64,000 bases of DNA from Trichosphaerium sp. ATCC 40318. Lineage: Eukaryota; Protista; Tubulinea. A program made the translations under genes and the position numbers. Where the stretch lies: contig JALMLS010000577.1 of assembly GCA_038496445.1 (NCBI GenBank), forward strand, positions 372,001 to 436,000. The letters run 5' to 3'. Position 1 is the first letter of the stretch; each line of letters opens with the position of its first letter. Under the pieces are notes generated by a model. It searched no databases. It was not told where the DNA came from and saw nothing but the letters and a program-made list of their open reading frames with translations. Below are positions 918-20,338 of this stretch, one piece after another.

Positions 918-3900
918 ACATTTCTTTCGAACGCCTTTACGGCATCTAAAGATCCTATTGGATGTGTACCAGAAAATCATCTTCAAAAGAAGGAAAATGC
1001 TTCGTCACTAGTAGTCACTAGTTCCTAACAATTTAACTTATTCTAAAAACAGTATTTCTGCGCTTGTGTGTCATATTTTTGTTTATTAGGAACTGTGTTC
1101 TAAAAATGGTAATCAACTCGATATCTAACAAAGCTAAGTGAATATCTAGATTACTATATTGACCAATTAATCGCGGTAGGAACAAGGATTGTCAATTGAC
1201 TTGATAAGCAATAATTTCGATCAGTGAAGAAGCCTCTCTTTGGGTACAACAATTCGAATATAATTGTGGTGCACAAATTACTTACCATCAACGAAAAACC
1301 GTTTCGGGGTAGTTCGTGTTTATGACGCTATTAAGCTTCCTGTCCCCTTACACTCGCTTACGACATAATATATTTTTCTCTTCACGTGTGCAGAAGTACG
1401 TACTAGCCAATCTCAACCAATAAATAAATACCCTATACTACCCCTTTCCTGTGTAGGGCAGCAGTGCTTACGAATAATAGGATACAAAGCCGCCAGAGTC
1501 CGCTACCCGCAAATCCCGCAAAAACTGTGTTATACAAGTACACACTATCTTAAGCCAACAAGATATTCAAAAAAAACCAAAAACCAACAAAGGTATCCAA
1601 CTGGTTCGATATTAATTGTTACCTTTGGTAAGTTTGCAAACTCAAATTTATCCGCTTAAGTGCGGAGAAAAAATACCAAAAAAATACAAGCTTACATTGC
1701 TTTACAGCACGTCATGACGCACCACATTTTTACGATAACCATCGTTATGTCTGGTACAATAGCCAAAACCGATTTCGTACTAAATCCTCCGAATAGCTTT
1801 ATTTATGCTCACAAACAGTCATGTACATAGTACAGAGTCAGGAGGTATGTTTTATAGCAAAAAGATCTGAAGCAAACACAAAAAAAAGCTGCACAGTATT
1901 TTCCTAAAAACAGTTTTTTCTATTGCCGTGCTGTATTGCTCACGCGTGAGGATTCATTGTAAGGTGGTAACAAAATAATAGGTTTCGATTGTGCGAATGT
2001 AATACACACGTACACGACAACAATATACCCCGAGCTACCACCATCAGCAATGAAAAGAGACATGTCCAAGAGGTACAAAGAAATAACAGAAAAGTCTGAA
2101 GTATTTTCCGAAAATGGAAATACGCCTTTTTTACTAAGTTCAACTAACACGTTATCTAGGTCAGCTTCATCGTGTGTTAACTTTAACTTTATTTTTGGGA
2201 GTGTAATATCAGAGGTACCGAAAAGAGGAAAAAACAACGCAAAAAGTCATCTAAGTGCTTTCTTTAGCCTGGTAATGCCGACTGGTTACAAACTATTCAA
2301 TTGGCTGGAGATATATGGGTACGCTAGACGTTTTATTTCCTAATACCTAATTTAGACTTTCCTTTACTGCTCAGCTGCATTCTCACTTTTTTTAGTCGTC
2401 GGTGCTACAAAACGATATAACAGTTGATTTTGCTTTTGAAATTGGCACACTAAATGGAGGCACTATCGCATCAGCATCAACTGGACTCAGTGCTACTGTT
2501 AACAACGCTGGCGCAATATTGTACGCCGATCTATTTGAAAAACAAAAAAAAAAAGAGTTGCAAACAATTCCAACCTGTTAAACATGGGATCCTCTAACGT
2601 TTACTTAACAGAGCAGCACTTAACGATAATTATCCTGGAACATACCCTTCAACAGTTTTGGGAATGAACTCTAATTTCCCAACAGTACGTACCTCCTGTT
2701 ACTCTGGTTCAATTTTTTTTTTTCTATTTTCTTGGATAACATTCCATTCAGGGTTTTTCGTATCAGCAAGAAGTTATTTTCTTTACAGAAGCGAACGGTA
2801 AAGCATTGATAGATGGCTTCTCACTAGCTGCCGACGATACTTCAATCATTTTTAATTCAGCATTTAATTTCGATGTTGATCTTACAGATGGTTTGGATAA
2901 TGTACGTTGAACTTGGCAAGTTTAGTTTTTTTTTTGGACCCAACGTCGACGTCTCGGAAACTGTCTTTATCTCGCCACACAATGTGAATATGGAAAACCT
3001 CTTGAGAAACGTAGTATTACAATATTTTGTTTGTGTACAAAAACAGTTTTAGTGGAGGGAAACAGACTTGGTTTTTTTTTTAAAGAGAGAAAATTTAAAG
3101 AACTTTTTTGTAATGTTCCTGTAGGGTAAGACAAACTTATTGGGTGTTGTATTACATGAGATGGGTCACGCTCTAGGTTACGTTTCGCAGGTGGAAAAAA
3201 GTACGTTTTACAACAACAACAAAAAGTGTTTACTTGAAGAAGATCCTTACGTTTGATTAGTCGACTTTGAAATGAACAGAAATAATCCAGTAACAATAAT
3301 AATGGCTGTACAAGATATGTTTAGAGTAGATGCCACTTCTAGTGGTGACACTTTTGAATTAGCAGACAGACAATATACTCCAGGTATTTGATTTTTCTTG
3401 TTAAAAAAACGTGTTAAAGAAAACTTCAGTTACCTCTTGTCTAAACCGTTTCTTTCAGGTCAAACTGCATTTTTTTATGCTCCTGATGGATTAACGACTA
3501 GTACGTTTTCTACTGGAACCACACAAGGAGATGGAAGGCAGGCTCCACATTGGAAAGTACGAAGACAAACCAAAAACAATTGTAGAGTTTTACTTGTCTT
3601 AACTCTACCGTTTAGGATAGCTTAAATATTGGTATCATGGACCCTACTTTTGCAGTCGGTGAAATATCTGGTATATCAGAAGCTGATTTAACAGGCATGA
3701 GAGCTTTTGGATACAACGTGAACAGTACGTAATGAAAAAACAACAGCAAAAAAAAAACTAAGCATTAAAAATAGTGAGCTCAGTCAAACCTTTTATTGTG
3801 CACTTATCAGCAACTTCTGGTACTGGTGGAGATGTTTTTACTATCCTTGGATTCTTCTTCTATGGTACAGTAATGTGTAACTTCGGCCAAGCGGGCATGA

Positions 3901-7682: not shown

Positions 7683-10600
7683 ATGGACACAAAAAAACAA
7701 GTCACTCGATGGAATGCAGCTAAACGTGCGTCTAATTAAAAATCACGTGTTTTGAAGCGTTTTTTGTTGACAACAGCTTCAGAACATTCGAAAAACGAAC
7801 AAAACTCAGCAAAAAGACGACCGATTTACCTTGCAAGAACCCGTATAGAGTAAGGGGCATTATGATTTACCGAAATTTACCTCTATTTTCTAGCCAAAAT
7901 CACGCTAAAGGCCCTACTGATCTTCACGACGCGTTACGTAAAGGTACAAAACAGAAAAAGTACAATTCGTGGCAATAATCAAAAAAAACCCAGGAGATTT
8001 GGACCAATCTTGGCAGCTTATAAACAATGGCATAATCACGTGCGTTGTAGACCCAAGCACGGGTAATAATGAACTACACCTTTTACTGCGAAGCGCATCT
8101 ACAAGTGGTGTTATATGGACGTTATTCCAACAGCTATTGGGACACGGTAGTACAAACATTAAAAAATATTTCACAATTTCGTATTTGCTAATGATTATTT
8201 TACAGGCGTCGATCACAGCTTGGAGAACAATGATGGAGATACTCCCGTACATTTATGTCTATATAATCAAGATTATGTGCATTTAAGGTGGTTGCTAAAG
8301 GCTGGAGCGAATTATCTTGCGGACAACAAGTGCGAGAAGCAATTACATAAACAACGCAAATAATTTTTTTCAAAAAGGCATGGTATGTCCCCTTACAAAT
8401 ATATCATAATGACTGGCGACTGTCAAGCGCTAAGAGAGCTTCCTAAAGGTGAGATAAATAATATTTACCGAATAAGGAACTAATAAGAATACAGAACACG
8501 TGGAAAAGATTTCACCGCGGAAAAGCTTAGCATAGCGAAAACAGCTGTTGAAAAAGGTTTTTGTGTTGGAAGCGTGACGTATTCTAAAACTCTTCGTGTA
8601 GGTCAAGCAAATATTCTTCAATACGCTTTTGAGGTTCTTAGAGTTGATGTTAATGATAAAATCGGTGATATATCTTTTTTGGATAAAGCTGTAAAGGTGT
8701 TATTAGAAACAAAGTCAATTCAAGATGAAATTCTCAAAGTGTTGATAATCATTGCGGCAAATATGAATCAAAATACGTCTAGGGAAAATGCTGCATTGTC
8801 GATGGTGAAATATAAACCACGTAGTCCTTCTCAGAAGATAGCTTTTACAACTGTATTCGATATGCTCCTTGCTGGTACCCTTTTTTTTTGCAGACTAGTA
8901 CCAAAACCTTAAATTTAAATTTTTTTGTTTGGACGTGTGATAAGATACAGACAACACAAATTTTTTTCTGTACAGTTTTCACAAGTGAGCAATATCCCTG
9001 AATATCAACTACAGCTTTATTTTTTTTCTTTCCACAAACTAGTACGAGCTATTGCTTGTACTCTTTTTTTTTTTTTTTTTCGAAACAAGAAAGAAATGTC
9101 GGTTTAACTTTATGTGCCAGGAACCTCAGATGTTATTGTTAAAGATTCTAAAGAGACTTTATTACATATCGCTGTATTGTTTAGTAATGTATTTGTTGTC
9201 AAATATTTACTTGATAAAGGACTAGACATTTCAGAACAAACAAAGTAAGCTACTCTCCAACACAACAAAAAACTAATTTTTTGCTTTAGAACAAACGAAA
9301 CAGCTCTGCACTATGTACAATCAAAAAGACTCCAAGCACCGCATCTAATAAGTCGTTTACCTCTAGGCTGCGAAGAGAGGCTCAAACAGTATTCTTAAAG
9401 TCTTACTAAACCATGTCAAAAAGAACAATATGGGATACCTCATTACTGATCAAGTTCGTCATTACAACTTTTTTCTTCCTCGCTTCTTGTTAACAAATAT
9501 TCAAGGGTCCAAATGGCACACCTCTAAGTATAGCTAAAAAAGAGAAGAATTTGAAAATGGTTGCACTACTACAGAAGCGGATGCCTAAAAAAATTCAATT
9601 CGATTCTCCTCTACCAACAGAACTTTGGGTTTCTGTACTATCTTTTTTCACATTATCTTCAGATCTTCTCGCTGTAGCTTGGACTTGTAGAACTTTTGCA
9701 TTATTAAGTGGTGGAAGAGTATCTACTATACGCGATCCACACGTTTTTAGGAGTACAAGTCATTGGCTTGACCCTGCTAAGAAGCAGCTTATAAATTTGG
9801 GTACGAAAGAAAAATCCGTTTTCAAGTTTACGCTTTTTTATGAGTTCCTGTCACGTGATATGATTAAACACGTGACAAATGGATTTTTTGGCCTGTTGAT
9901 GGTTCTTTTATTAATGGCATTATTCATTTAGAACGAAGACAAAAGAGGAAAACGCGAATGCTTGGTTCGTTTAGAAGTTCAATAAGAAGAAAATCACCGA
10001 AGCTGAGACGCACTATTTTGTCTAAATCAGAACCACGAATGATGCTGAAAGAAAACGTTCTAAACGCTCCTCTGAAAGTAGTATTATATGGAGAAACTGA
10101 CACAGGTACTAGACAATCCTCGCTGGTATAATTCTAAAACAACTTTTCCTCGCAGGCAAGACTCAACTAATTACGAGATTCTGTGATGGCATCTACAGTG
10201 ATATTTGTGGATCACCTTTCCAAGACTATGTACGCTACTTATGTTCTCATAACCAAGATTACACCATCCTCACAATTATATCTTTAGAAACCACGTGTTG
10301 TTTCCGTTGGAGAGAAGAGATTCATGCTTCACGTGGTACAAACTCATTGTTTAGAAAATCCAGTCATTTTTTGGATACTTTCTCCTTTTAATGTTGAATT
10401 TATTTAGTATGAGTCCGATACACGTCTTAATGGCAGATCAACAGAGAATAAACATAATGCAAATATAAGTGTCATTTGCTGTGATGTTAGTAAAAATTGG
10501 GGTAAGGAAGAAAACCCAATTTAGCGCTACTAACTTTGTTTTTTTACAGTTCAGAATAACGTACCAAAATGGTTACGTGAAGTTGGTTCAAGAGATACTG

Positions 10601-10904
10601 TAGTTGCACTTGCTTTATTGAAATGTGATATCACGGAAAGAAAAGTATCTAATGAGGATATTCAGGTAAACATAAGACTTTTAAAAAAACCGTTTCAACC
10701 ACGTGAATACATGAAAGAAAGAAGCGAAGTGAAATTTACTTTTTTTGTTAGGCTTTTTGTAGAAGCAACCCAAGCATTATAGCCGTTGAAGTAAGCGCTA
10801 AAAAAGATATGAATGTAGATAAGCTATTCACAGTAGCTGTCCGAGAAATTCAGAATAGGATAAAACCAAGTATTCGTAGAGTCTCATCATTAATGTCGAT
10901 GTAA
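7683..10904 (+). CDS. Ankyrin repeats + F-box + C-terminal Ras/Rab-like GTPase domain
   Basis: Ankyrin motifs (KETLLHIAV, NETALHY/AAKRG, GTPLSIA), F-box PLPTELWVSVLSFF (about 9608), then PLKVVLYGETDTGKTQLITRF (G1), LLKCD (G4) and EVSAK (G5). Stop at 10902-10904. Confidence 0.75.
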
Positions 10905-11031
10905 CCTAAATAACAAAAGAAAAAAAAAACAGTTGTGTTTGCATGAAAACTACTTTATTATAAAATAACCTTGTGTTCAATACGTGATACAATTACGTTG
11001 TGTATGACCTATACACCTTCAGAAAAAAAAA

Positions 11032-12290
11032 TTAGAGATCAAACAAGTCATGACCCGCTAAAAGTTTAGGTATCTCACTTTTTTGCACATAATCACCATT
11101 TGCCTTCCGTAATGGAAATGTCATTGCTTGGCGTTTTCCATTGATATAAAAATTCTCCACAAGCAATTGGCCATTGTCATACCATCTCTTGTACTGTCCT
11201 TCACGTATTCCATTGAAATAGTAGCTCTCTTCAAACAATTGACCATTGTTATGCCACTTCTTGTACTGCCCTTCAAGTAATCCACAGACATAATGTCTCT
11301 CTTCCCACAGCTGACCGCTACTGTACCATTTCCTTGCAACGCCTACATGTTTACCATTCTCGAATATATCATCTTCGTGCATTTGGCCGTCATAAGTACA
11401 CTCTCTTTCTAATCTTCCGTTGCGATGCCATTGCTTATAAGCTCCTTTAAGTTCATCGTCAACATAGTAAGATTGTGCCCTTAAGTGGCCATTATCCCAC
11501 CACTCTTTGTACTCTCCAATGCGTTTGCTATAGATTTTAAAAGAGCAGTTGGAGCTATAAATGAAATCAAAAGGCGTGATCAATCTACGTCTAGTATTAC
11601 TTTTGATCTCGGTTGTGAGAGGGGTGTAATAGCAAGATATTCTCATTTGGCCGTTTCTGTGCCACCACTTAAACGCTCCTTCTACAGAGCCTTTGGCGTA
11701 GTAGCACTGTATCGCCATCTGGCCTGTTTCAAACCATACATTGACTTCTCCTTCTTTAACACCGTTGACAAACTTAACTTTGTACATTAATTGTCCGTTG
11801 TCATGCCATTGTAGCCACACTCCATCTTCCTTACCATTGACAGTGCTACCTTTTAGGAACAGTTTGCCGTTGTCATACCAAGACTTGAACTCTCCATGAC
11901 GCTGACCATGATTCCAACATTCTTGGCATACAACCTGAGTACCTGCGGTTCTTATTTGGTGATCACTCACTTCTATTTCTGCTGATCCGTTGATGGTATC
12001 TCGTTCATAAACAGTTCTGTGTTTCAACCATTTTCCGTGCTTGTTCAAGTCATTATCGAATCTTGTGGTAGTTGCTGTAAACTTTGATAATAGAGACCAT
12101 TTTGAATACACTTCTGGATCAAGGTCGATAATATCAAGTTGTAATTCAAGTGGAAGATTGAGTAATCTGTTCATAGGCTCTTCTGTGTTATCGCTCTTTA
12201 TCTAATACGCTTGCATTAGAAATAAGCAACACCACAATGATATCGATTGTTTACCTTTTTCTCAGGTGATGGCTTCATTGGTACGTTCAT
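11032..12290 (-). CDS. F-box-like + MORN-variant (MORN_2/YwqK-like) repeat protein, copy A
   Basis: ORF 11032-12174 has LLNLPLELQLDII followed by many G.YK.W..NGQL repeats. A probable short first exon MNVPMKPSPEKK (12290-12255) precedes intron 12254-12202. Confidence 0.9.
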
Positions 12291-12907
12291 ATGCGTTGCT
12301 TAAGGTGCGTTGCTTGTTTATTCTAAAAATAATATTTCTATCTTCAATCAATGCAGATTGAAAACAATTTTAGGAATGAAAAAATACGAAACAAGCAAGA
12401 ACCAACACACAAAAGTAACACATCGGTGCACGACCGACCGTGTGCCCCAGAAATTACGGCTATAGCTGTACTAAACTACCACTTCATCAATGCGTTATGA
12501 TTATGAACATTACTCAACTAACAACTCAGGTACACCTTTGCCATTTTTTTGTGTTTCCTAACAACGTTCGCAAAGCGTTTCAACAAAATAGCAACGTGGC
12601 TATTCAAGACTCATACTACCACCTAAATACATTATAGCTGTAAAGCAGAACAAAAACTAAAACGGAAAGAAAGCACAAACAAAATAAAACAGCACCTTTT
12701 ATCACGTGATTTTTTTGTAGTTATCACGTGCGGTTGATATAAAATCGGGTTGCATAATAACACTCCGAGTGTAGTCAAAGGAACACTCACAATGTAGTCA
12801 ATCAATTTCGACCTCACATAAAAAAGAAGAACGCAGCAAAGCTTGAGTGCTAAAAAAGCGGGGTACAAAGGACCGAGCAGTTACACGTCTCCGTTTATAA
12901 TTACAGC

Positions 12908-15900
12908 ATGAGCGAGTTTTCATTTAACACATACACGTCTTCTCGTCCTCCTAGTAGGAAACCACCTAGCAGGGCGCCTCCACGATCATCAACACCACCT
13001 GGTAAAATGCCACCTATGCCTCCGCAGAGAACTGGTGGACTTGCGGTTGCTGATAATCAATTCGACTTTACTCAAGTGGATTCTGATACTAATATTGAAC
13101 TGGAAGACAGTGGTAAAATTAAAGCGGCTACATTTGAAAAACTGATAGAGAAACTAACATCACCAAAATTTTCAGGTACCGGATGGTTTAAAACAGTTAA
13201 AACTATGCTAAAGTTATAATAGATAACGACCTGTTATTTGATTTCCTATTAACATACAGAAGTTTCGCCACTCCGTTCGTTGTAGTCGATGCGATGATTC
13301 AAAGATATCCTTTCTACTTAATGAGCGAAAGAAAGCGCTCATTGTGCATTTTAACCGTTTATATCTATTGCGCATGCATTTTTAACCCTTTTTGCGTCTG
13401 TGCATTACCCTCTTATTTTAAAACGTATTTTCCTTAACCGTCCGTACAGTAACGACACTCATGGCTGCTGATGGTACACTTGGAAAGGAAGATAAAATTA
13501 CTGTATTCAAGTACGGTATTTTTTTTTCCTCTGTATAATAGTCTAGACGCGCTTTACAAGCAATGTAGATACAATTACGAGCGTGAATAGTCTTTTTGTT
13601 AAAAACTACGCGTTTGCGGTCAATTATATGTTGGACGTAGTTTGAGTGCTTCTCACTGCCTCTACTCACATATACGCTGACCGCCAAAATTATAAACAAA
13701 CTAGCTATTTTTCGCCGCTAGTAAACGCTTAACAAGACGATTTTTGAAGTTTACGCTTTGTTAGAGTATTTAATGTGTTTGTGCATTGGGTGGACAAGTT
13801 TTGGTTCGATTTCTCAAAAGATTGCCCAAAACTGAGCGATAAGCTAAAAGCATGGCTGAATGAGTGTAAAAAAAATGATGTCCTTGCTAATAGGCATGTA
13901 TACAACCCATTTCAACCCTAAACAAAGATCACCTTTAATTAATTTTACTTTAGCGCTAAGCGACTAGCAAATAAACTCAAGAGATGGGTACGAACATTGT
14001 CAATGTTTTAGCGCTGAACTTTTTTCGAAAAGAGAAAAAAAAACACGTGATTTTTGCGGTACAGATTGGGTCATTTATTTATTTCCGTTTAGGAAGAAGG
14101 TGAAGCTACACGTGTGCTTGAGACAGGACCTAAACCACCGAAGTCTAAAATGTTAAAAAACGCAAATTGTTTATGGTGGGAAGAGGATGCTACAGAAATC
14201 GCCAGACAATTGACTATAACTGATTGGAAGTTGTTTGAAAAAATAAGACCTTGGGAGCTACTAGGACAAGCATGGACGAAGGTAAAGACGCCAGCATTTA
14301 AGAAAAAACAGTGAATGACTTCCAACGCTTTATTATTTTTTTTTTCAAGATGGAAGCTTAGTGACTTTATAGGACAGAGAATTGGCTGCTAATGTAATAA
14401 AATGCACTGAACGGTTCAATTATGTTAGTGGGTTCATACAGACATCTATTCTCACTACAGAGAACCCAAGAAAGCGTGTTCGTGTTCTTGAAAAATGTAT
14501 TGAAGTAGGCGAGGTACGCAATGATTTTGAAGCACTTGAACCACCCTTCAGTACTCCAAAAAAACCAAGAAACCTAAACATACTTCTAGAAATGTTCTGA
14601 AATAAAGAATATCAATGCAGTCATGGAGATAGTCTCAGGTAATAAAATTACTACAAAAAAAATATGGAAAACCTTTTTACTGACATTTAAACAAAAAGGT
14701 CTTAATGCTGGTCCTGTATTTCGGTTGAAAGAAACTTTTGGTGCTATATCAAGACATCACAAAAAAGCTCTTAGTGAGCTCAATGAAATAGCAGATAGAT
14801 CTAGAAGTTATGCAAAAATGAGAGCACACCTTCAACGCCTCACTCCACCTTGTATGATTTTATATCAAATCTTTATTTCGAAAATCATTTTTTTAAACTC
14901 TGTTAAGTACTCAACGTTGTTTGTAGGTATCCCATTCTTAGGAATGTTTTTAACAGATTTAACTTTTATTGAAGAGGGAAATCCTGATACTATACGTGGA
15001 CTTGTTAACTTCTATAAACGCCGCCTTGTACGTCAATCTTTTTTCTCTGTTCTAATTGAAGGACCCATACACCACCTTAAGCATCTCTTGTGCTAATATA
15101 TGGTACTGATTACTTCTAGATTTCAGAAACAATTAGAATGATACAGCAATTCCAACAAGGAAACTATAACTTTAACCAGCAGCCACGTATACAAAAAAAG
15201 CTTAACAAGAAAAAAATACTAAAAGAAATGGATTTGTACGAGTGCTCCGAATATCTCGAAACGAGGCCTGGTAAAACGCCACCAGAGAAACCAGAGGCTC
15301 TTGGTGTACGTTATATACACTTCAAACAAGTAAGCATAACCGTTAAGCTTTATTTAGGGTAAAAAACGTCCACTATCTGAACGAGATCTTCATTTTGAGC
15401 TTCAACATGTTGAAGGTTATCCTTTCTATCCAAGAGACGGTCCTAGTAATATTTCAGTTTCTGATAACGGCATGGTTATGTATGCAACTCTACCCAAACT
15501 TGTACGATAACACTTAGCTATTCAACCGAATGTGAAGTAATTTTTTTCTTTTTAAAGGTTGAACGCGTTACACATCACATATCCTACGATTCTTCTCTCC
15601 TATCACCGTTTTTAGCAACATTTAGAACATTTACAACACCTTGTACGCTATCTTAAAACGTTAGTCTTTGCGTGTTTAACAATGAGTAGCAGAACTTCTG
15701 GAATTACTCAAGTGGAGATTTAATGTGCCTCCTTCAAAGAAAACTGATTCAGACACGCTTGAAAATTATCATAAACGGTTTAAACAACCAGTTCAGTTGA
15801 GGTTAGTTAAAATTACTCCCAACTAAAAACACAGCATGAAAATCACGTGATTTATTTTGGAGTTTAACTTCCTTTTTTTTTAAAATCAAATAGAGTAGTG

Positions 15901-18384
15901 AATTTAATGAAGGGATGGATTGATCGACATTACTATGACTTTGAAGACGATCCAAACTTGTTACAGCTTGTAAAAGCGTTTATCGACGGCGACATTGAAA
16001 ATGAAGCCGCCAATTACGCTAAGACGTTACGTTCGCTCTTAACAAAGCACGAGGATGTATGTCAAAGCATTGCTTATGTTATAATATCAATTTTAATTGT
16101 TTTAGGGTAACTCGATACAACTGGACTCTTGTCCAGCTCCGTACCTACCAACAGTACAAAAAGAAGTTAGCGACTATCAAGTACTCGATTTTAACCCTGA
16201 AGAAGTACGTTGTAGTTAATCTGAACTATCATTAACTAATACTTCTTTCTAGCTTGCTCGTCAACTCACACTACTTGACCATGAGCTATTTAATAAAATA
16301 CGACCTAGTGAACTCTATGCAAAGGCGTCTCAAGGCGCTTCTAAAACAAAAACAGCTCCTAACCTTGTGGGCTTAACTAAGCGGTATCAAAAGGTACTTC
16401 GGTTCTCAAAAGATAGGTTTCTTAAGTTTGTAGACAATGTCATGGGCTTCAGAGTTAATCAACAGGTCACGTAGCAGAGGTGAGATTACGCGTTTTGCAA
16501 TGCATTTTTAACTTTGATGTAGGAAACACACCACAGGTTTTAGACGCACTTGTGGCAACTGCAGAGGCAAGTAGATAGTGCTACATGGAAAGTAACTTTG
16601 ATTAACTAAAACTATAGCATTGTGAAAAGCTTAGCAATTGGCAAAGTATGAGAGCTATAACCAAGGCTCTAGATAAAGCATTTGTACTTGAAATGATGGA
16701 AGATTGGAAAAAAGTCAGCTTGAAAGTAAGTTAGTTCGTCTGGCGTTAGGCAACGATATACTGGTTGGTTTTTGACTTGTTTGGTAGGGCAGAAAGTATT
16801 TAAACGATAAAAAGGCTTTACTTGGCATGAAGCACCATGAAGAACTTGAAAAGATAATGCAGCGTTGCTTTGCACCTTGTGTACCTTACATGGCTGTTTT
16901 CCTTGAATCAATATCACAGCTTGAAGAGACCCATAATACAAAACCACCTAGTCCTGCACTTATACCAGTTGACCTTTACAGATCTTTTGGCAACATATTG
17001 GATCGCGTAAATAGGTACAAAATAAAAAAAAAGAAGAATCAAATTAGAATAGTCAAGTCAGGTAGTTAGTGAAGATTTTGTTTTGCGCACTTTTTTCCCT
17101 TGTATAGCCGATTCCAGGCATCTGGCCTTTTGTTTTTTATACTCTTGTAACCGAAATGATAGCATGCAACGAAAGCCTTATGCTTTACGGCCAGTACCAG
17201 TTATACAAGCTTACCTTAACCAACCTTGGAAGATTTCTCGTTCAGCTAGTTCAGACAGTTTAAGTGCCGTATCGCCAAGAGCATCTCCTAGAATGCAACG
17301 GGCTAATCAAGGTAATAGTGGTACGTACACGTCCGTCCTTTGAGCTGTAGGTTCGTTGCAAGTAAATAACGTTACTACATCGAACACAAGCTCCTGCATA
17401 ACGTTGCAGTCGCTTTGGTATGAATTATCGGTTGGTACTTACAAACACTCTAGCTTCTAATATGACAAGTATACAAGAGTTAAAACCAGTTATCATGGAT
17501 CTGCTACGTAATGATAACGAATTCAAGCAATCAATCGCTGGTGTGATCAAAGAAGTGTGGCAAGAGGAGCAAGAGAAGTTTCTACGCGAACTACGAAACA
17601 TGGAGCCACAGTACGTACATTTGCTCCTTTTAATTTACTTTGCGCCTAAAATAACCGTTTATGGCGCAAACTATGCTATTCTACGCATACTGCGCCCTTA
17701 GCGGTCGGTACTAGCGAATTTCACCTTACCAATTCTTTTTCCGACCACTGTATCTTAACGTTTATGTTGTAGGGTTGCACCGGCGACTAATGGACGAGCA
17801 ATGCCGATGGACTTTGGTTCGAGGTATACATTACAAGTTCTGGACGATTTGAAACTAATTCTTTTTTTTTAGAGCAAGACGCTTTCTGGAAGATGAGTTT
17901 TCTGGCGCACCTCTATCGACTTGGGAGTATTATGATGCTCGAGGTATAGTTAATGGAACCCCTGGTACCGTGTCAATTGATGTATTGAAGAATGGTATGC
18001 AGTGGACACTAATAACGAGGTCTCAAGACATTTGATTTGTTTACTTTTTTTTCTGCAGGTCATGATAATTACTTGTGTGGAATCGAAGAAAGATTGGACT
18101 CCAATGGTGTTAAGAGTATTATAGCGATTGGTAAAGCATATCGTGAGCATAATCCAAGCTTTAAACTCGCTTGTATTCTCATATCTCAGGATATATCTCC
18201 AGACGCATTGGCTCTTTGTCAAAGGTGTAAGATAAAGGTATGAATGCGATTACTATCGTTTTTTTTCGGTTAACAAAATGCGCGTAAAGGCAAACGTGTT
18301 TTTTGTTACATGTGATTTTTATTTGTTTATTTTGAGTAGGTATACAACACAGACGGTTCTGGACAGTTTGTTGGTGTCGCGTAG
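12908..18384 (+). CDS. RasGEF with Pro-rich N-terminus, two REM+CDC25 modules and a C-terminal DUF3782-like domain
   Basis: Module 1: [50 protein letters not shown]. Module 2: YATLPKLV, FLATFRTF, LARQLTLLD, PCVPYMAVFL. About 20 short introns. Confidence 0.9.
13305..13447 (+). other. U12-type (minor spliceosome) AT-AC intron
   Basis: 5' splice site ag|ATATCCTTT, branch site TTTTCCTTAAC at 13428-13438, AC acceptor at 13446-47 (alternative 13452-53). Splicing restores the REM frame; read-through hits a stop. Confidence 0.85.
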
Positions 18385-18791
18385 ATGACTTTAAATATTA
18401 ACAAAAACAAAAAAAAAACTGAGAAGTAAGATTGTAATGACCTTCAAGTACGCGTGTATGATAGTAATTAAAAGGAATGAAAAAAAAAAAAAAAAGAAGT
18501 CTGGTTACTTCTGGCTGTAAGTTTAGTGTGATGGCCATTCACCACAAAGGGGCCGTTTCCCAATGAATTCGTGGCTTGTTGTGAATGTCACGTTGTTTAC
18601 ACAAACCCTTGCAACCAGTCCTCTTTGATATCACTAGTTCTGATTCATTTTTCGCTTATTATAATACCTTTCTTTGTTATAGCCAATCAATAGATTCGCT
18701 CCATCCAATACAAGCTTGAATGCGCGTGTGGAATGTCAAAAGTAGTCAATACATTTTGTGTTGGAAAATTGCTTTTTGTTCAGCTTGAAGT

Positions 18792-20338
18792 ATGGAAACA
18801 GTTCCTCCAGAAATACTCTCGTTTGTCATTGATCATTTGCAGCTATCTGATGCCCGTTCATTGCGGTTGGTCAGTAAAGAGATAAATTACACTAGTAGTA
18901 TATCTAACCTATGGCTGGTACGCTAAAAATGACCGGAGGCGGCTTTTTGACAGCTTTTCGTTTTAGACGCTTTAAAACGAGCTTATAAATACATGTGTCG
19001 CGTCAAAACTTCGATTATAGCCGTTTTATTTGTTTGTGGCGTCGAAGGACTCTATTTTAAATCAAACCCATAAGGCTTGAAAATAAACGCCACCACCGCG
19101 TCCAAAACGACAAACCTCTATAAAAATTACCATTTTAAACGCCAACGTCACGTTTTCAAACCGAGAAAATTCTAAATATGTTCAAGGAATACACTACCCG
19201 CTATAAAGCTAATCTTGTGATTGGTGATGTTCTTAAATCATGTCCTCAAGGTCTTAAAAATAAACCTTACACAAACCTACATGATATCGCTACAGACAAT
19301 GACGGAAACGTACGAAACACACTCCGTAACCATTGAGAAAACAAACTGATTTTTTTTTTGTCAACAACCCTTTTCGTACACAAGTAGGAGGTTCTCAAAA
19401 AGTCTGCTACTCCTAGATTGAAAACAATAGCTTTTATCTACTTCGTATTGACAATTTCCTATTCTTCTGTTGGTCATTGCTAGAGACCTGTTTTTGATCC
19501 AAGACTTTTTTTTCTTGTTTTTTTCTGATCGATTTATTAGTTGCTCATCGCAACCTCACAGCGAGCAAATCTTGTTGGAAGTATGATAACAATTTCTAAA
19601 GTATTATTCAAAGAAAATAGATTAGAACCTCTATTCAGTTATGGAAAAGACCGTGACTGTCATATGCATGTTAATAGAAACACAAACACACTGTGGCTTG
19701 TATTTGCAAGAGAAGTAACGAGGATTGATCTCCATACTTGTACTCAAGCAGGACCTGTTATTAAGATGACAAGTCCAGAGATGATATCACCTTACAAAGA
19801 CTGGGCTATTGGTGCTTCATACACAAGAACCCGCACAAGAGATAGTTTTTATACACTTAAAATAAGACACATTGGCATTGATGCTGATGTTGTTGTTATA
19901 CCTCATCAGTTTACTTCAAAGTATGTTGGTAGTTGTAATCTTGTATCTATTGTATGTGATGGAGATGATCTTTATATAATAGATAGTTACGTTGGGTTAT
20001 ATATTATCGAAAATTGGGCAGATAAAAAAAGAGTTAAAGTAAAATTATTACTTGAACATAAAAGAAGGAATACTCCAAGTAAGAGGTTGAAGTATATGTA
20101 TAAGCTTACTGGTATGGCTATAAATGGCGCCTATTTATGGGTTGTTTCATCAGCTGGAGTGTTCAGGATATATAAACCTACTAAACGTGTTATCAAGTGT
20201 TGGCTTCGTCCTTCTGGATCAGAAAATTTGGTAATGCCTCAAAGACTTGTTTTTATTGATAAAGATATGTATGTTACTGCATGCTCTTTAGTCAATAATA
20301 CGTTATCTTATGTTTACCACGTAACTCCAGAACACTAG
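18792..20338 (+). CDS. F-box protein with beta-rich (propeller-like) C-terminus
   Basis: First exon METVPPEILSFVIDHLQLSDARSLRLVSK is an F-box; the last exon is ORF 19541-20338. Confidence 0.7.

Follow-up and report, generated by a model that had tools for sequence, protein, structure and literature searches.

A probably inactive nuclease fold of the DUF3782/PDDEXK_10 type at the C-terminus of a tandem RasGEF in Trichosphaerium sp. ATCC 40318

DUF3782 segments (PF12644) have been described as coiled-coil stalks preceding a prokaryotic family of PD-(D/E)XK endonucleases (PMC4786415). The present study deals with a stretch of 64,000 nucleotides (nt) from Trichosphaerium sp. ATCC 40318 (the window, to which all positions refer) and with one gene in it, whose coding sequence (12908-18384, plus strand) encodes a protein of 1091 amino acids (aa). 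This protein consists of two successive units of a Ras guanine nucleotide exchange factor (RasGEF) and a C-terminal tail encoded by the last five exons (17454-18384). The tail is almost certainly homologous to the proteins combining DUF3782 with PDDEXK_10 (PF07788) and is best regarded as a divergent and inactivated eukaryotic offshoot of the PDDEXK_10/DUF3782 family.

The prokaryotic members, for example those encoded by cyanobacterial open reading frames (ORFs) of 224-380 aa (L125-L138), show the same order of elements as the tail, i.e., helix, linker and alpha1-beta1-beta2-beta3-alpha2-beta4-alpha3-beta5. Both share D..G.V.G.P ahead of beta2, h-x-I-D within beta2 and an I/V-x-V-Y strand at the C-terminus. 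The prokaryotic proteins occur unfused and carry long repetitive coiled coils, whereas the tail possesses a putative stalk of ~43 residues and is fused to the tandem RasGEF. An invariant E-x-D...E-x-K characterizes the prokaryotic family; in contrast, the tail reads S-I-D...G-I-E, and the eukaryotic proteins conserve FPG, W, IGKLYK-NP, LAC and CKIKV instead.

With respect to the host protein, the amoebozoan RasGEFs and the SOS/CDC25 family share the RasGEF_N and RasGEF catalytic units, but the window protein has two such units and a nuclease-fold tail. The catalytic units of the host are those of an ordinary RasGEF, but their number, two, is unusual. The accessory domains reported for Dictyostelium Gef proteins are LisH, F-box and DH/RhoGEF; the accessible part of that article (PMC1273635) mentions no tandem GEF and no nuclease-fold tail. 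Both features on a RasGEF are likewise absent from the literature searched, as far as its texts were accessible, and papers on PDDEXK_10 or on a combination of PDDEXK and RasGEF were not found there.

The gene, its transcripts and its eukaryotic relatives

The fusion of the tandem RasGEF and the nuclease-fold tail is real. Among the public contigs placed on positions 12800-18500, one intron-free contig of 3392 nt (run X1) covers the gene from 12902 to ~18388. The region around the gene is intron-rich and eukaryotic, with a G+C content of 35-40%. The parts of the gene are as follows:

12908..17320, plus strand: upstream exons encoding two RasGEF_N-RasGEF units and a Ser/Pro-rich linker (aa 1-907 of the transcript ORF P0040; Pfam, spliced contigs)
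17163-17320, plus strand: last upstream exon, with the donor site G/GTACGT
17321..17453, plus strand: phase-1 intron between the RasGEF part and the tail (contig arithmetic 17320/17454; P0040 across the joint; paralog)
17454..17610, plus strand: tail exon 1 (E1), conserved amphipathic helix with the motif hLxLhxxDxEF+xEh (P0040 aa ~908-960)
17773..17823, plus strand: tail exon 2 (E2), low-complexity linker VAPATNGRAMPMDFGS (joints 17610>17773 and 17823>17873)
17873..17994, plus strand: tail exon 3 (E3), alpha1, beta1 and beta2 of the PD-(D/E)xK fold (Pfam DUF3782, hhalign)
18059..18237, plus strand: tail exon 4 (E4), beta3, alpha2 (IGKAY), beta4 (LAC), alpha3 and beta5 (CKIK) (Atlas features, profile search, hhalign)
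18340..18384, plus strand: tail exon 5 (E5), last 14 residues and stop codon TAG at 18382-18384 (spliced form of P0040)

The introns among the tail exons and into E1 all have GT..AG borders. E1 follows in phase 1 on the exon that ends at 17320 (...AGT G/gtacgt), and the reading frame continues from the Ser/Pro-rich end of the RasGEF part; across the 17320/17454 joint, P0040 reads ...QGNSASNMTSIQ.... The C-terminal module that follows the Ser/Pro linker comprises ~185 residues, namely a 43-residue helix, a linker and the PD-(D/E)xK fold. The joints 17610>17773, 17823>17873 and 17994>18059 were seen in spliced contigs of three runs and match the model exactly, while 17014/17163 (with an ATAG ambiguity), 17320/17454 and 18237/18340 were fitted by depth-bin and record arithmetic. 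The joints of X1 recur in contigs from two other studies (X2 and X5). Record 9 of X5 spans the RasGEF end into E1, and a loose end of X5 at 18241 runs on into E5. The X5 run carries a SMART template-switch oligo and, therefore, represents cDNA. Between 16057 and 16787, the enumeration of exons from depth bins gave no solution; the model in this section is confirmed by P0040.

Independent of these contigs, a profile search seeded with E4 returned the protein P0001 (1078 aa), while P0040 (1091 aa) came from a cluster look-up. Both are ORFs of MMETSP0405 transcripts (taxon id 498012, Trichosphaerium sp. ATCC 40318; Amoebozoa, Discosea). Over its full length, P0040 is identical to the spliced model, and it maps on the window collinearly at 100% identity. 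In both proteins, the two RasGEF_N-RasGEF units are joined in frame to the tail. The tail exons were searched singly, and the joined protein was represented by P0001 and P0040. Two stretches each of RasGEF (E 2.9e-90, 301.5 bits) and RasGEF_N (E 6.8e-47, 158.5 bits) were detected by Pfam in P0001, all above the cut-off. The original prediction, made from the window's letters alone, had placed the exons at these positions apart from small corrections (E1 at 17454-17610; E2 at 17773-17823, a part elided there), and its translation is identical to P0040 residues 909-1091. The in-frame fusion to a double RasGEF that it had proposed, with transcript data named as the check, is borne out by the two copies of each Pfam domain, the spliced contigs and the MMETSP0405 ORFs that extend across both parts.

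The two transcript ORFs differ at their 3' ends. The intron 18238-18339 is spliced out in P0040, which ends with ...KIKVYNTDGSGQFVGVA, and is retained in P0001, which runs for one further codon into a stop (...KIKV*). As a consequence of this difference, the last beta strand is not the same in the two isoforms.

A second copy of the gene was found in the Trichosphaerium assembly (70.3 Mb) on contig C33. It is collinear with aa 78-1078 of P0040, comprises tandem RasGEF and tail, and shares the phase-1 intron before the tail as well as the phase-0 intron before the last exon. The E3/E4 junction of the window gene is covered by a single exon in the C33 paralog, which independently supports the direct joining of E3 and E4 in the coding sequence. 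The paralog also contains an intron of the type GCACGT...AG (L002, ~1645-1712, minus strand) that is required for the frame; with it, the alignment with the window protein is gapless.

The profile search seeded with E4 yielded 39 relatives, and 30 tails could be aligned. Eukaryotic relatives number at least 30 and are mostly located on tandem RasGEFs (Pyxidicula, Nolandella, metagenomes and the second Trichosphaerium gene). The named sources are Trichosphaerium (Discosea) and, within Tubulinea, Nolandella sp. AFSM9 and Pyxidicula operculata. At least eight relatives of 1000-1500 aa end in the tail domain (P0006, P0008, P0010, P0014, P0018, P0024, P0035 and P0037), and P0041 shows the same architecture in one uninterrupted ORF of 1157 aa on a 24.5-kb multi-gene contig. 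Standalone short homologues of 160-230 aa were found in eukaryotic metagenome contigs, e.g., P0044 beside an INO80-like gene. The combination of tandem RasGEF and nuclease-fold tail is a conserved family in amoebae and is not unique to the window gene. The earlier statement that no such architecture was known agrees with the literature searched, but the architecture is shared by the second Trichosphaerium copy and by the proteins from Nolandella, Pyxidicula and the metagenomes.

The possibility that the tail is a separate gene starting at ATG 17462, or that its linkage is an artefact of contig assembly over two neighboring genes, was weighed against this distribution. This ATG lies 8 nt into E1, the standalone homologues of other eukaryotes (P0044 among them) would correspond to such a gene, and a contig spanning two genes alone is no proof of a single transcript. 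In addition, the SMART template-switch oligo (...GTATCAACGCAGAGTACGGG) of run X5 is joined at 17586 (plus strand) inside tail exon 1 and marks a cDNA 5' end. However, position 17586 is located downstream of the ATG and within the coding helix, which indicates a truncated cDNA; a truncated molecule is most simply what this end represents. The frame is continuous over the phase-1 intron in both paralogs, and the MMETSP ORF is complete and fused. The fused relatives, together with the single ORF of P0041, render a separate gene very unlikely, to the point of being nearly negligible.

Public annotation gives genes of this kind no more than the label 'son of sevenless homolog'. The entry XP_049850693.1, annotated as 'son of sevenless homolog [Schistocerca gregaria]', consists of a tandem RasGEF with a PDDEXK_10 tail. 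Its gene (L157; 3263 bp, 1002 aa) is located at 10001-13263 of JAKZLS010000521.1, an unplaced 248-kb scaffold of GCA_023897955.2, and is very compact, with ~250 nt of introns in total. This scaffold is probably DNA of an associated protist and not of the locust.

Homology and predicted fold of the tail

The resemblance of the tail to the DUF3782/PDDEXK_10 proteins greatly exceeds chance. Single exons gave weak but concordant signals, and comparisons with the whole family gave strong ones. For E3 alone, the sole Pfam match was DUF3782 (E 0.048, profile positions 51-78 of 78). Judged by the cyanobacterial proteins, these last ~28 model positions correspond to alpha1 and beta1 of the nuclease fold and not to the coiled-coil stalk. 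For E4 alone, the nearest neighbors by language-model features were cyanobacterial DUF8196, DUF3782 and PDDEXK_10 clusters. PF07788 was matched at E <= 0.1 by 17 of the 30 family tails (best 4.6e-7) and PF12644 by six of them; one relative, P0006, passes the PF07788 cut-off (24.9 vs 21.2 bits). When the eukaryotic alignment was compared with a cyanobacterial DUF3782+PDDEXK_10 alignment using hhalign, a probability of 98.1% (E 1.3e-13) was obtained over 112 columns without a gap. A hidden Markov model (HMM) built only from the 30 eukaryotic cores found the PF07788 genes of Cyanobacteriota (8 of 201 genomes, best 3e-12) and also matched genes in 3 of 201 Chloroflexota genomes; no match was obtained in the 201 Myxococcota genomes sampled. 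Scanning the cyanobacterial sample with PF07788 itself gave 9 positive genomes out of 201, and in the proteins detected DUF3782 is immediately followed by PDDEXK_10. Of the 17 gap-poor rows in the alignment of the 30 tails, most keep the helix motif of E1; the hydrophobic period is 3.6-3.67.

Other searches added no relatives. NCBIfam gave no match on single exons, PF12644 none in the Trichosphaerium genome assembly in six frames, and tblastn of E3, E4 and the P0006 tail against plasmids resulted in chance hits or none. Sequence searches of the PDB with E4 and with the family profile gave no or spurious coiled-coil matches, and word-index protein searches returned only the query itself or P0032. 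The prokaryotic relatives are patchily distributed and all about equally distant (28-48 bits), and none of those in the bacterial genomes sampled stands out as donor. A chance resemblance or a contamination was rejected, because the gene has a paralog and contains spliceosomal introns, one of them of the U12 type.

The structure predicted by AlphaFold2 (AF2) from the family alignment reached a predicted local distance difference test (pLDDT) value of 90.8 and shows a long helix, a disordered linker and then alpha-beta-beta-beta-alpha-beta-alpha-beta. The helical part covers tail residues 10-23 and 25-52 (pLDDT ~95), whereas the E2 linker has a pLDDT of 66-70. The closest shapes in the ESM Atlas are archaeal DUF3782/PDDEXK_10 clusters (PF07788+PF12644; 112 residues, root-mean-square deviation (rmsd) 2.1 A). 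In VIA-align, PD-(D/E)xK nucleases ranked highest, with NucS (2vld, Z 11.9) followed by AF1548 (10.5) and Can2 (9.1); further matches were VC1899 (Z 8.9), an XisH-like protein (8.4) and Card1 (8.2), and Rpb5-like subunits (7eu0_E, 8hil_E) were also among the fold matches. A prokaryote-type DUF3782/PD-(D/E)xK domain had been predicted from the letters of the window, with a DUF3782 match and a restriction-endonuclease-like fold expected from profile and structure searches, and both were obtained. Metallo-beta-lactamase entries in the Foldseek output were rejected as sandwich matches with a low template modelling score that are missing from the VIA-align ranking.

The best solved match, the C-terminal domain of NucS/EndoMS (2vld, 5gke), shares the PD-(D/E)xK core with the tail over 99 residues (rmsd 2.7 A). 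NucS differs in its N-terminal DNA-binding domain and its intact active site, the sequence identity is only 8-14%, and the PDB searches gave no match at the sequence level. Only residues 126-233 of the NucS chain, i.e., its C-terminal domain, align with the tail, whose N-terminus is a long helix. In Can2 and Card1 of type III CRISPR systems (8bao, 7bdv, 6wxw; Z 8.2-9.1), the same fold is located at the C-terminus of a larger signalling protein. In contrast to the window protein, which has no CARF domain, has lost catalytic residues and is combined with RasGEF partners, these are active nucleases gated by a CARF sensor.

One of the cyanobacterial genomes contains a head-to-tail array of seven DUF3782+PDDEXK_10 genes with ~1 kb spacing (G072:C1:3607578-3614122; L137, L139-L143). 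The nuclease domains in the array are nearly identical (75.9-76.4 bits), the open frames range from 256 to 324 aa, and two more copies are located elsewhere in this genome. The differences in frame length presumably stem from a varying number of coiled-coil repeats.

Active-site residues and the role of the tail

Four residues (E147, D149, E161 and K163) are invariant in the alignment of 12 cyanobacterial sequences (A3), and E-x-D...E-x-K is present in all 15 of the cyanobacterial and Chloroflexota cores extracted (...VEIDV...CEIKS... or close variants). In the hhalign register, S1011, D1013, G1025 and E1027 of P0040 occupy these E-D-E-K columns, so that three of the four residues, including the lysine, are lost. 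In E3, Ser replaces the first Glu (S1011, 17973-17975) and the Asp is kept (D1013, 17979-17981); the (D/E)xK slot in beta3 is G1025-I-E1027 (codons 18079-18087, E4). This loss of catalytic residues had been suggested in the original prediction from the G-I-E in the E-x-K slot; the exchange of the Glu in E-x-D for Ser comes in addition. With S-I-D...G-I-E in place of the invariant E-x-D...E-x-K, a metal-dependent cleavage of phosphodiester bonds is very unlikely, and on the basis of its residues the window copy is most probably catalytically dead.

None of the 30 eukaryotic tails carries E-D-E-K. The commonest combination is E-D-D-R (three tails), and Q/T/S-D-D-K was also seen. E-D-D-R is found in P0008, P0009 and P0011 and in the C33 paralog, Q-D-D-K in P0006. 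These relatives, the retained D1013 and the acidic residues E1027 and E1028 in beta3 are what would speak for an active, unorthodox nuclease, or for one that is active only in the paralog and the relatives with E-D-D-R/K, which would make the protein a bifunctional GEF-nuclease. However, three of the four residues that are invariant in the sampled prokaryotes are replaced in the window copy, among them the Lys, and in the eukaryotic family the four catalytic columns rank with the least conserved, other columns reaching 83-100%. An active nuclease is, thus, considered quite improbable.

The G of IGK is invariant in the eukaryotic tails, and F, P, W, L-x-C, N-P and C-K-I-K are conserved to 63-97%; the conserved set as a whole comprises FPG, W, IGKLYK-NP, LAC, CKIKV and the N-terminal amphipathic helix. 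The drift of the catalytic columns, together with the conservation of the other motifs, suggests that the constraint has moved from the active site to other surfaces. As far as the alignment indicates, such a shift is characteristic of a pseudo-enzyme that is retained for binding. Inactive PD-(D/E)xK folds are retained in eukaryotes as structural or interaction modules, namely the endonuclease-like domain of Prp8, the EME1/ERCC1 partners and the Rpb5-type domain. These cases belong to other PD-(D/E)xK families and hosts, and we know of none that is tied to Ras signalling.

On balance, we favor the interpretation that one gene encodes a 1091-aa double RasGEF with a tail of DUF3782+PDDEXK_10 descent, which probably serves as a domesticated pseudo-nuclease module for interaction or oligomerisation. 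The C-terminus of a tandem RasGEF would have acquired a whole prokaryotic module of helix, linker and nuclease fold, with a loss of catalysis afterwards. The tail would then work by binding rather than by cutting. It would most likely self-associate, with the helix and nuclease-like core as interface, a behavior also proposed for its prokaryotic relatives, or else dock a conserved partner; by either route the tandem GEF could be clustered, localised or gated. As a function of the tail, self-association or docking to a protein is a tentative assignment with somewhat less than an even chance, and the remaining probability falls to functions that cannot be named.

Several points weigh against this interpretation. 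The window protein stays below all Pfam cut-offs for DUF3782 and PDDEXK_10: its PF12644 score is 13.7-14.3 bits with a cut-off of 24.4, and PF07788 has no match on the tail at E <= 0.1. The comparison of the N-terminal helix of the tail with the cyanobacterial N-termini by hhalign is weak (E 0.039, probability 1.3%), and with its ~43 residues the helix is far shorter than the prokaryotic stalks. The E-D-D-R relatives, including the second Trichosphaerium copy, imply that the family may not be uniformly inactive, and D1013 with the two acidic residues leaves a small chance of unorthodox catalysis in the window copy itself. A predicted homodimer of the tail scored 0.02, which weighs neither way but lends no support. 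Finally, the literature searched held no biochemical data for any family member, prokaryotic or eukaryotic.

A conserved and so far undescribed architecture of amoebae thus combines a prokaryotic DUF3782-PDDEXK_10 module, stripped of its catalytic residues, with a tandem Ras exchange factor. If the favored interpretation is correct, it is a clean case of the domestication of a nuclease to an adaptor. The functionally uncharacterised PDDEXK_10/DUF3782 family gains a eukaryotic branch with a conserved surface to probe, and a new regulatory handle on amoebozoan Ras signalling may become accessible.

Binding of a nucleic acid or of a nucleotide-derived ligand has also to be considered as a function of the pseudo-nuclease, in which case the tail would be a sensor coupling cytosolic DNA or RNA (originating, e.g., in prey, in giant viruses or through damage) to the activation of Ras. 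A sensor or an oligomerisation module had both been suggested in the original prediction. Folds of this type serve as scaffolds for DNA binding, and the closest solved shapes are DNA and RNA nucleases. Twenty of 30 family members are basic at the Lys position, the K-rich motifs IGKLYK and CKIKV are conserved, and the eukaryotic cores are on average more basic than the prokaryotic ones (+2 vs -4.3). Much DNA derived from giant viruses has been reported in Trichosphaerium (PMC10521059). However, the window copy has a net charge of -1 and a Glu at the Lys position. The likeness to Can2 and Card1 lies in their effector nuclease domains and not in the CARF sensor domains. Two scans of viral contigs, by a limited method, gave no viral relatives, and direct evidence for a sensor was not found. 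A sensor of this kind is, therefore, possible but unlikely. The more specific proposal that the dead nuclease fold, originating from a horizontally acquired prokaryotic nuclease, is a receptor for nucleic acids or nucleotide ligands that switches on the tandem RasGEF appears seriously doubtful. If it were true, an amoebozoan pathway would link the detection of foreign or damaged DNA or RNA directly to Ras signalling.

Unusual introns and neighboring genes

Two introns in the RasGEF part deviate from the GT-AG type. The intron at 13305-13447 (plus strand) is an AT-AC intron of the classical U12 type; its 5' end is ATATCCTTT, the branch site TTCCTTAAC is located at 13431-13439, and the intron terminates with AC. 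It was spliced out in contigs of three runs, and its presence in the gene indicates that Trichosphaerium has introns of the minor spliceosome. A GC-AG intron (GCATGT...AG) at 13894-13953 (plus strand) is likewise confirmed by spliced contigs. On its 5' side, the gene is neighbored by a 380-aa ORF of MORN repeats with an F-box-like N-terminus (11032-12174, minus strand), and a second F-box-like start (METVPPEILSFVIDHL...) is located on the 3' side at 18792-18926 (plus strand).

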